Shown here piece after piece: positions 57,987 to 58,386 of a stretch of DNA of 64,000 nucleotides. The position numbers and the translations under genes were made by a program. This DNA comes from Bacillus subtilis subsp. subtilis str. 168. Lineage in GTDB: Bacteria > Bacillota > Bacilli > Bacillales > Bacillaceae. The notes under the pieces are model-generated. The model was given only the letters and a program-made list of their open reading frames with translations. It ran no database searches and had not been told where the DNA came from. Position 1 is the stretch's first letter. Each line of letters starts with the position of its first letter. The stretch covers positions 992,001 through 1,056,000 of the forward strand of contig NC_000964.3 in NCBI RefSeq assembly GCF_000009045.1, in the 5' to 3' direction.

Positions 57987-58011
57987 AGAGAGCGCGGAAA
58001 CCGCGCCCTCT
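57987..58011 (-). terminator. Terminator after sspB
   Basis: Minus strand AGAGGGCGCGGTTTCCGCGCTCTCT followed by TTATTTT. Confidence 0.8.
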
Positions 58012-58030: not shown

Positions 58031-58234
58031 TTATTGAACTCTGCCGCCCATTTGCTGCTGAGCGAAAGATACTAAACGTTTTGTGATTTCTCCTCCGACA
58101 GAACCGTTAGCGCGAGAAGTTGTGTCCGCTCCAAGGTTAACGCCGAATTCAGAAGCGATTTCAAGTTTCATTTGATCGATAGCCTGAGCTGCGCCAGGAA
58201 CTAGTAAGTCATTTGAAGAGTTTTGGTTAGCCAT
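58031..58234 (-). CDS. sspB: Beta-type small acid-soluble spore protein
   Basis: [26 protein letters not shown] signature; SD AAAGGAG before ATG 58234. Confidence 0.98.
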
Positions 58235-58260
58235 GTGTAAAATCTCCTTTTTATTTAGTA

Positions 58261-58332
58261 TGGTTGGGTTAACTGGAGTTGCACCAATCTGTGAACCCTT
58301 CTCGGGTGTCACTGCCGCCTCGGCGTAACCCA
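58261..58332 (-). ncRNA. Candidate tRNA-like structured element in the sspB 5' leader
   Basis: UGGGUUA/UAACCCA stem + A + CCA; T-arm AUUGG-UGCAACU-CCAGU; D-like GCCG-AGG-CGGC; 8-bp middle arm. Folded by eye only. Confidence 0.55.
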
Positions 58333-58356
58333 ATGCTTTGCCGGCTTGTTACTACG

Positions 58357-58386
58357 TATTATGTTAAAATGGCCGGAAAATCATGC
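58357..58386 (-). promoter_or_regulatory. sigmaG promoter of sspB
   Basis: GCATG-18-CATAATA; implies a leader of about 115 nt. Confidence 0.85.

Follow-up and report, generated by a model that had tools for sequence, protein, structure and literature searches.

A tRNA-shaped element akin to tRNA-Gln in the sspB messenger RNA leader of Bacillus subtilis and related Bacillales

The sspB gene of Bacillus subtilis encodes an alpha/beta-type small acid-soluble spore protein (SASP). Here we examine the leader of its messenger RNA (mRNA) within a stretch of 64,000 nucleotides (nt) of B. subtilis subsp. subtilis str. 168 (contig NC_000964.3, positions 992,001 to 1,056,000; hereafter the window, whose own numbering is used throughout for this genome). 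Between the promoter and the start codon of the gene, an earlier note made from the sequence had pointed out a 72-nt element with the outline of a tRNA and had proposed that it is a tRNA mimic which would direct the processing or stabilisation of the message or be cut out as a spore RNA of its own. We analyze this element by structure prediction, covariance modelling and comparison of SASP leaders from Bacillales genomes and metagenomes. The element emerges as a conserved, tRNA-shaped domain with a close kinship to tRNA-Gln(UUG), and we weigh the roles that such a domain may play in the sspB mRNA.

The sspB locus and the fold of its leader element

The gene order in this part of the window is yheH-yheG-yheF-sspB-yheE-yheD-yheC. 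Read on the minus strand from promoter to terminator, the features of sspB are the following:

58382..58386, minus strand: -35 sequence GCATG of the sigma-G-type promoter of sspB, matching GHATR
58357..58363, minus strand: -10 sequence CATAATA, after an 18-nt spacer from the -35 (from sequence and homologous loci)
58333..58350, minus strand: predicted single-stranded 5' leader AACAAGCCGGCAAAGCAU, about 18 nt, unpaired in the whole-leader fold, its length derived from the promoter
58326..58332, minus strand: acceptor stem, 5' strand UGGGUUA (from sequence, fold and covariation)
58314..58324, minus strand: D-like hairpin GCCG-AGG-CGGC, 4 base pairs (bp), from the fold; homologous to the D arm of tRNA-Gln, with a shortened loop
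58291..58312, minus strand: arm in the anticodon position, 8 bp plus a bulged C, with a GAGAA loop, non-decoding (from the fold)
58272..58288, minus strand: T arm AUUGG-UGCAACU-CCAGU, with a T-loop of the type U[U/G]C[A/G]A (from sequence, fold and alignment)
58265..58271, minus strand: acceptor stem, 3' strand UAACCCA (from sequence and fold)
58261..58264, minus strand: ACCA tail (discriminator A plus CCA), internal to the mRNA (from sequence and homologue comparison)
58235..58260, minus strand: A-rich spacer up to the ATG, with the Shine-Dalgarno (SD) sequence GGAG at 58247-58244 (from sequence)
58031..58234, minus strand: sspB coding sequence, 67 amino acids (aa), alpha/beta-type SASP (from sequence and homology)
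57987..58011, minus strand: intrinsic terminator of sspB

The element thus occupies 58332..58261 as a tRNA-shaped cloverleaf. Its 5' part, starting at 58332, is UGGGUUA-C-GCCG-AGG-CGGC-A-GUGACACCC-GAGAA-GGGUUCAC-AG, and its 3' part, ending at 58261, is AUUGG-UGCAACU-CCAGU-UAACCCA-A-CCA, which is exactly the sequence quoted in the earlier note. The strands UGGGUUA and UAACCCA form an acceptor-like stem of 7 bp followed by A-CCA, and the 5-bp T stem AUUGG/CCAGU, with one U.G pair and a 7-nt loop, adjoins the acceptor 3' strand, giving a predicted acceptor/T stack of 12 bp (7 + 5). Folding with RNAfold, a check proposed in that note, returns the cloverleaf described there: the four-way junction is both the minimum free energy (MFE) structure and the centroid of the isolated element, at -27.4 kcal/mol, compared with -18.2 +/- 2.8 kcal/mol for dinucleotide shuffles (z = -3.34, with none of 200 shuffles equally stable), and the fold is unaltered when the whole leader is folded together with the start of the coding region. 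The arm in the anticodon position had been read as non-decoding, and both its GAGAA loop and its variability or absence among homologues bear this out.

A strict descriptor of the tRNA top half, demanding 7/7 acceptor pairs, 5/5 pairs in an abutting T stem, a U[U/G]C[A/G]ANN loop and then NCCA, has a single match on the two strands of the window, the sspB leader element, and no match in 100 first-order Markov random sequences with the size and dinucleotide make-up of the window. The top half of a canonical tRNA is present in full, with a 7-bp acceptor on a 5-bp T stem and a 7-nt T-loop containing U54, C56 and A58 next to G53:C61. The lower half departs from the canonical form, the D-like loop having 3-5 nt in place of the 7-11 nt with G18 and G19 of a regular D arm, and an anticodon arm of 5 bp with a 7-nt loop and U33 being absent. 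At the level of sequence and predicted structure, the element also has what is expected of an RNase P substrate, namely a 12-bp stack, a T-loop, a single-stranded 5' leader and a 3' RCCA.

A decoding tRNA was considered and rejected on account of the missing anticodon loop (8 bp and a bulge closed by the 5-nt GAGAA loop), the truncated D-loop and the failure of tRNA finders to report the element; a tmRNA was rejected given that position 3:70 is G3:C70 and not G3:U70 and that ARAGORN reports no tmRNA. ARAGORN predicts no tRNA gene and no tmRNA in the 64-kb window, and among 31 homologous loci it calls a tRNA in one only, the Bacillus haynesii copy (L008, 2895-2970), which it types as tRNA-Arg(tcg). 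Because of this call, some genomes may list members of the sspB leader family as tRNA or pseudo-tRNA genes in error. Rfam 15 has no family at gathering score anywhere in the window, reports nothing on the element at E <= 10 in the window and nothing at E <= 1 on ten homologous loci. The earlier note knew of no description of the element, and we likewise found none of a tRNA-like SASP leader in the full-text open literature and bioRxiv, although an older or paywalled mention is possible.

The promoter sequences GCATG and CATAATA, separated by 18 nt, make up a perfect sigma-G-type consensus upstream of the element, and the start site of sspB would be expected about 7 nt past the -10, near 58350. 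The element ends 27 nt before the A of the sspB ATG (58234); the sigma-G promoter (58357-58386) and the 27-nt distance given in the earlier note both agree with the sequence. When the consensus GHATR, 17-18 nt, CAnnnTA was sought at all element loci, 25 of 30 had it upstream of the element and none had it between element and ATG; the end of the -10 is mostly 15-33 nt away from the element, with distances of up to 143 nt at some loci. At SASP genes without the element, the sigma-G consensus ends 22-25 nt before the ATG. To judge from this sequence arrangement, the element is transcribed and is the first folded domain of the sigma-G sspB mRNA. The interval between the -10 and the element has a composition of its own in several loci (L014, L022, L035, L045, L048, L053, L070 and L073), where it is C/A-rich, nearly devoid of G and U and predicted to be unstructured, with a motif of the type (A/U)GUACAAAGCAAC soon after the -10, near the expected start.

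On the other side of the element, the B. subtilis SD (AGGAG, 58243-58247) is predicted to pair weakly with CUCUU in sspB codons 7-8 (about 58207-58211), a pairing that is inconsistent across genera, where predicted SD accessibility ranges from 0.05 to 0.78. Sequestration of the SD by the element itself was rejected, the domain folding autonomously. The encoded protein is 97% identical to those of the B. spizizenii and B. halotolerans loci and 100% identical to that of one metagenome contig.

Distribution, covariation and kinship with tRNA-Gln

A scan with the SspB protein, using one genome per species, yielded 80 SASP loci in Bacillales genomes. Homologous elements lie upstream of alpha/beta SASP genes at 29 of these 80 loci and on 38 metagenome contigs, every one of them between a sigma-G-type promoter and the ribosome-binding site, and most of them at the syntenic yheD/yheE-sspB-yheG/yheH locus. 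A covariance model (R1) restricted to the acceptor, D-like and T stems was built from a MAFFT alignment and detects 33 copies in 543 kb of Bacillales sequence (the window and the 29 loci), all just 5' of an alpha/beta SASP start codon, with no copy outside SASP leaders in the same 543 kb; the gene-proximal copy ends 27-45 nt before the ATG. Element-bearing loci occur in the B. subtilis group, the B. cereus group, Alkalihalobacillus, Fredinandcohnia, Robertmurraya, Neobacillus, Metabacillus, Siminovitchia, Mesobacillus, Sutcliffiella, Niallia, Anoxybacillus and Geobacillus, and these lineages fall into several families in the NCBI and GTDB taxonomies. Metagenomes were searched with a 25-nt pattern comprising only the T arm, the acceptor 3' strand and CCA, which produced 45 sites: 38 are complete elements followed by a SASP open reading frame (ORF), one is an element on a contig that ends 37 nt further on, and the remaining six are five chance matches without the 5' half and one genuine tRNA-Gln(UUG).

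Base pairing was assessed by counting pairs in the MAFFT alignment, which had not been fitted to any structure. In the acceptor helix 89.6% of cells are paired and five of the seven pairs have changed on both sides (pair 4:69, for instance, is G:C in 20 sequences and A:U in 10); in the T stem the paired fraction is 85.6%, and three of the five pairs have compensatory double changes. The covariation score of 0.27 is reached in none of 500 column shuffles (0.145 +/- 0.012), a control that overstates significance because the sequences are related, and it falls to 0.12 or less when the 3' partners are slid by 1-3 columns, a control free of that weakness. The same covariation picture is obtained from a model-fitted alignment, and most homologues, when folded singly, have the same cloverleaf or three-way junction as their MFE structure.

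Conservation is concentrated in one half of the element. Columns of the T arm, the NCCA tail and both acceptor strands hold 1.1-1.4 bit each (1.11 for the tail), compared with 0.33 in the anticodon-like arm and the 5' flank, and in the T arm G53:C61, U54, C56 and A58 are invariant or nearly so. In 26 of the 33 copies [A/G]CCA stands directly after the 12-bp acceptor/T stack, where a tRNA has it, and the length of that stack is preserved across register shifts. The arm in the anticodon position has a wholly different sequence in each genus with the hairpin retained, and it is absent from the B. cereus group and from the upstream copies of tandem elements. Based on the information content and the position of the CCA, we take the conserved part to be the top half of a tRNA, the decoding half having been free to drift. 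The earlier note had named conservation and covariation of the acceptor and T stems, and conservation of the CCA, across orthologous leaders as checks on its proposal; the stems are conserved across genera with compensatory changes, and the tail is retained as just described.

An association between the two loops of the elbow was observed in alignment A2 and in the metagenome copies L085-L129. T-loops with G55 (UGCAA) nearly always occur with an AG[A/C/U] D-like loop, and those with U55 (UUCAA) mostly keep GG. This association, in counts that ignore phylogeny, may represent tertiary 18:55 covariation that keeps a tRNA-like elbow.

Real tRNA genes (24 + 5 + 2, scored with filters off) served as a yardstick for R1 and include arrays from a Peribacillus asahii plasmid (24 genes, 20 isotypes) and a Brevibacillus laterosporus replicon (5 genes). 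The tRNA-Gln(UUG) gene ranks first in three of three arrays, at 28.7, 27.5 and 20.9 bits, and the next best scores belong to tRNA-Ile (14.8 bits) and tRNA-His (12.2 bits). The Peribacillus array is an observation in its own right, placing 24 tRNA genes of 20 isotypes on a plasmid of 78 kb (NZ_CP085721.1; L130, 2394-4599).

Direct alignment leads to the same relative. The B. haynesii element reads TGGGCTTTAGCCGAGAA--GGCAGCGGTTTTC where the Peribacillus tRNA-Gln, in the same alignment (A3), reads TGGGCTATAGCCAAGCGGTAAGGCAGCGGATTTTG: acceptor and D stem are the same, the D-loop of the element is about 5-6 nt shorter, the first 30 nt are near-identical apart from this deletion, and the anticodon arm diverges after its first bases. 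The D arm is GCC-AAG-(N)-GGC-A in the element and GCC-AAGCGGUAA-GGC-A in the real tRNA-Gln. Many copies retain further tRNA-Gln features in U1:A72 (22 of 33 copies), G2:C71, G3:C70 and the A/G discriminator. The element and its apparent ancestor therefore share U1:A72 with G2 and G3, the D-arm sequence GCC-AAG..GGC-A, the 12-bp stack, the 5-bp T stem with its 7-nt T-loop, and an A/G discriminator followed by CCA. They differ in the D-loop, cut to 3-5 nt in the element, in the anticodon arm, which has become an arbitrary hairpin or is missing, and in the variable region of 0-2 nt; the B. subtilis element moreover has G55, sits in an mRNA leader behind a sigma-G promoter, and is passed over by the Rfam tRNA model and, like 30 of 31 loci, by ARAGORN. 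Because R1 ranks tRNA-Gln(UUG) first in all three arrays, we conclude that the element is almost certainly an exapted copy of tRNA-Gln(UUG) that has retained the top half and lost the decoding half. The identification as a tRNA mimic in the earlier note is strongly supported by this kinship together with multi-genus conservation, compensatory changes and the purine-CCA tail.

The genomic setting of the element is likewise conserved. Genes with the element share a yheC/yheD/yheE - sspB - yheG/yheH neighbourhood in the B. subtilis group, Robertmurraya, Neobacillus, Siminovitchia, the B. cereus group, Sutcliffiella, Metabacillus and A. macyae, and loci without it do not share this neighbourhood. 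Because element genes keep the syntenic locus, the element is an old, vertically inherited feature of the sspB locus. A SASP protein tree of the 80 loci was tried for dating its origin and set aside as uninformative, there being too few columns and paralogues of one lineage clustering together; synteny was used instead. In that tree paralogues with and without the element fall together by lineage (L052 and L076 with L053 and L070; L004 with the B. subtilis sspB group), a pattern which suggests that SASP coding regions may have been homogenised by gene conversion while their leaders stayed distinct. Mobile SASP genes, comprising sspC of phage SPbeta and four genes on three Priestia/B. cereus plasmid loci, have no significant R1 match, the best (12.2 bits) being a bare hairpin, and no viral contig matches the element.

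Some leaders carry two elements. Tandem copies within one SASP leader were found at Neobacillus-type loci (L035, L038 and L070, and also L115 and L123), and in the first three they lie 11-50 nt apart at the following positions of the respective locus:

L035: 2782-2856 and 2910-2973, upstream tail GCCA
L038: 2845-2892 and 2908-2966, upstream tail GCCA
L070: 2796-2843 and 2911-2971, upstream tail ACCA

In the upstream copy the anticodon-like arm is absent or long and the tail is [A/G]CCA; the gene-proximal copy has no CCA and ends in CCCCAAA or CCCUAA.

Related structures were observed in Brevibacillus. At L061 of Brevibacillus parabrevis (about 2918-2974) the leader likewise folds into a three-way junction, in which the T arm is canonical (GGCGG-UUCAAAU-CCGUC), the D-like arm is UCUC-AGUCGGU-GAGA and CCA is absent, and which R1 misses; at L047 of Brevibacillus sp. 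TJ4 (about 2925-2980) the three-way junction is kept with no recognisable T-loop. Among the loci scanned, L017 (NZ_PVBT01000036.1, 242 bp) encodes a Bacillus-type alpha/beta SASP in an assembly of the alphaproteobacterium Phyllobacterium myrsinacearum, and this contig is most likely a contamination of that assembly.

The evidence on distribution and covariation bears on whether the element is a functional RNA at all. It might instead be a fold that arose by chance, a tRNA pseudogene in decay, a promoter element at the DNA level or part of an extended SspB ORF. Some features of the window invite such a reading: a 100-aa ORF spans the element, the sequence CATACTA (58262-58256) that overlaps its 3' end resembles a sigma-G -10, and both ARAGORN and Rfam miss it. 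A chance fold or a decaying pseudogene is at odds with the absence of matches in 100 random windows and with conservation through compensatory changes in lineages of several families according to NCBI and GTDB. An internal promoter at CATACTA was rejected, as the motif lacks a -35 partner and is kept in the closest relatives only, in contrast to the conserved sigma-G consensus upstream; the scenario that the earlier note had raised against itself, with the main start at CATACTA and an untranscribed element, finds no support on the same grounds. The candidate N-terminally extended SspB, read in frame through the element from a TTG at 58333 (58031-58333, minus strand), is not conserved in relatives and was rejected because 24 of 28 loci have an in-frame stop after the element and before the ATG; this ORF is best seen, from the comparison of leaders, as an artefact of ORF listing. 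We consider it extremely improbable that the element is anything other than a functional RNA.

Possible roles of the element in the sspB mRNA

RNase P, RNase Z and the CCA-adding enzyme recognise their substrates by the acceptor/T-arm stack and the elbow. An encoded CCA inhibits B. subtilis RNase Z, acting as an anti-determinant, and favours binding of RNase P. Decay of mRNA in B. subtilis hinges on whether RNase J1 and RNase Y can reach the 5' end, and 5'-terminal structures or a strong 5'-proximal SD stabilise mRNAs. Against this background we propose that RNase P would cleave where the acceptor stem begins and remove the short, unstructured stretch in front of it; the sspB mRNA would then start within the acceptor helix, its 5' end hidden inside a compact fold like that of a tRNA. 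RNase Z would be kept away by the encoded CCA and the domain would stay on the message, where it would act as a cap-like 5' stabiliser against 5'-end-dependent decay by RNase J1 and RNase Y. Such protection would serve the brief period in which the forespore makes very large amounts of SASP. We tentatively regard RNase P trimming with retention of a protective 5' cap as the most likely function of the element.

A comparison of leader types fits the stabiliser view. In the 130 nt 5' of the start codon of alpha/beta SASP genes (loci L001-L081), three leader designs can be distinguished. The first combines a short leader and an extended SD, AAGGAGGUGA, near the start site, pairing with the anti-SD at about -17 to -18.5 kcal/mol. 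The second, present in sspC of SPbeta and at L060 and L080, has a simple 5' hairpin (..CAAGCUUG..) directly after the promoter and a modest GGAGA SD. The third consists of the tRNA-like element with a GGAG[A/U] SD of about -10 kcal/mol. Median SD energies are -10.6 kcal/mol for element genes and -17.1 kcal/mol for short-leader genes, pairing being weaker where the element is present. Paralogous SASP genes appear to solve stabilisation in other ways, through a short leader with an extended SD or through a plain 5'-terminal hairpin.

Several observations weigh against a retained cap. Six of the 33 copies, namely the gene-proximal copies of Neobacillus-type loci and that of L062, have no CCA, and three genomes have a CCA-bearing copy followed downstream by one that lacks CCA, an arrangement that fits tRNA-operon-like processing at least as well as it fits a retained cap. 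In the window, about 18 nt separate the predicted start site from the element, which would come to lie right at the 5' end only after trimming by RNase P; in several genera it lies 50-143 nt from the -10, and hence it is not always 5'-proximal before processing. In B. subtilis itself, position 55 of the T-loop is G and the D-like loop is very small, so the elbow of this element may differ from that of a real tRNA. Finally, since a plain hairpin suffices as a roadblock, the idea of a stabiliser leaves the kept T-loop and CCA unexplained if taken alone.

These points bring forward, as the main rival, a processing signal comparable to t-elements and mascRNA. RNase P would again cut at the 5' side, and the 3' side would be opened by an endonuclease (RNase Z where there is no CCA, another enzyme otherwise) or by 3' exonucleases, yielding an sspB mRNA with a short leader and a free, CCA-ended RNA of about 72 nt that would accumulate in forespores and spores, perhaps with a role of its own. 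The CCA-less copies, the operon-like tandems, the promoter-distant elements and the sufficiency of a plain hairpin are what make excision the main rival. The element has the architecture of a pre-tRNA with a correctly placed purine-CCA, the tandem copies of L035, L038 and L070 resemble a small tRNA operon, CCA-less gene-proximal copies would be open to RNase Z, and the spacer that remains after the element has a normal SD. A stable fragment would be expected in any case when the mRNA decays, as 3' exonucleases stop at tRNA-like ends. The CCA encoded in B. subtilis and most other genera, however, should block RNase Z, and once the domain was gone, 26 nt of unstructured leader and a moderate SD would remain, which is less protection than either of the other leader types offers. 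On balance, excision seems to us an unlikely, though serious, candidate for the function of the element.

The simple hairpin that occupies the same place in sspC-type leaders also raises the question of whether the element is more than a structural roadblock or insulator, with tRNA features merely inherited from a tRNA-Gln gene, that stalls RNase J1 after RppH or keeps the leader from interfering with the SD; recognition by a tRNA-specific enzyme would then be unnecessary. The free drift of the anticodon-like arm and D-like loop and the persistence of the three-way junction in Brevibacillus sp. TJ4 (L047) without a recognisable T-loop are in keeping with such a device. It requires neither the unpaired T-loop nucleotides nor the single-stranded NCCA, yet these are among the best conserved positions, and the 12-bp length of the acceptor/T stack is maintained across register shifts; we judge a plain roadblock improbable.

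Descent from tRNA-Gln opens a further reading, in which the element is a binding platform or decoy for a factor able to recognise the elbow of a tRNA or the identity elements of tRNA-Gln (for example the CCA-adding enzyme, GatCAB, the non-discriminating GluRS or a ribosomal tRNA site), and would couple sspB translation or stability to the tRNA machinery of the forespore. To our knowledge, Bacillus has no GlnRS and uses GatCAB instead. GatCAB reads U1:A72 of tRNA-Gln, the pair kept in 22 of 33 copies, and the element also keeps G2:C71, G3:C70 and an A/G discriminator; the joint change of T-loop type and D-like loop sequence suggests a maintained elbow. In a third of the copies, on the other hand, a G1:C72 register replaces U1:A72; the CCA is internal, which precludes aminoacylation while the element is on the mRNA; no genomic association with any such factor was seen at the examined loci; and the proposal is purely speculative. 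A binding platform is, in our estimate, a rather remote prospect, and RNase P trimming with a retained cap remains the reading that we prefer.

Known tRNA-like structures and implications for spore biology

Structures resembling tRNA are known in longer RNAs, including viral tRNA-like structures (TLS), plant mitochondrial t-elements, mascRNA, the tRNA-like domain (TLD) of tmRNA and bacterial Y RNAs. Plant mitochondrial t-elements, the mascRNA of MALAT1 and the MEN-beta tRNA-like element share with the sspB element a non-decoding tRNA-like fold in a longer transcript, with a conserved acceptor/T half read by RNase P and RNase Z. They lie at 3' ends or between genes of organellar or nuclear transcripts and their cleavage has been shown experimentally, whereas the sspB element is in the 5' leader of a bacterial mRNA, mostly has an encoded CCA, and is a candidate for cleavage. 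The TLD of tmRNA and the Y RNA module (YrlA, for example) similarly retain the acceptor stem and T arm with the D region reduced, and tRNA enzymes act on them; they are stand-alone RNAs with partners of their own (SmpB and AlaRS for tmRNA, Rsr for Y RNAs), and tmRNA has G3:U70 and a tag ORF, in contrast to the sspB element, which has G3:C70 and is part of an mRNA.

Among B. subtilis mRNAs, the aprE leader hairpin, the ermC leader and the cry3A STAB-SD are 5' stabilisers made of simple hairpins or SD sequences without tRNA features. The likeness lies in a 5'-proximal structure or ribosome-binding site that belongs to an mRNA expressed at a very high level in stationary phase or sporulation, and sister SASP genes carry devices of this kind; the difference is that the T-loop and CCA of the sspB element, a putative stabiliser, are conserved. 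A tRNA-shaped domain joined to a translated message also occurs in tRNA-mRNA co-transcripts and viral TLS. The tRNAs of the Escherichia coli thrU-tyrU-glyT-thrT-tufB transcript are functional decoders that are released, and viral structures of the TYMV type are 3'-terminal and aminoacylated, whereas the sspB element cannot decode and has an internal CCA. We found no earlier record of a bacterial sporulation mRNA whose 5' leader carries a module derived from tRNA-Gln and kept at one locus across several families; the identity of the module is firm.

Taken as a whole, it is possible, if doubtful in its full extent, that a tRNA-Gln copy was captured in an ancestor of the sampled lineages and made into the tRNA-mimic 5' module of one major spore-protein mRNA. 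There it would be acted on by tRNA enzymes (RNase P and possibly the CCA-adding enzyme, RNase Z or GatCAB), giving a protected 5' end, an abundant tRNA-shaped small RNA stored in the spore, or both. One prediction is an abundant tRNA-shaped fragment in spore RNA preparations. For annotation, the B. haynesii copy called tRNA-Arg by ARAGORN is a warning that such elements can be mistaken for tRNA genes; for expression work in Bacillus, the element is a candidate stabiliser or processing tag that is both compact and portable.

The sspB leader appears to hold an unannotated structured RNA that is conserved across several families of the NCBI and GTDB taxonomies. If tRNA-processing enzymes act on it, it would be a clear bacterial case of an mRNA with a domesticated tRNA as its 5' module, and RNase P and CCA biology would be tied to the stability or processing of mRNA in the forespore. 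If true, this would also explain why sister SASP genes retain three leader designs despite homogenised coding regions, and it would define an unrecognised class of bacterial mRNA leader in which the tRNA maturation machinery controls the fate of an mRNA.

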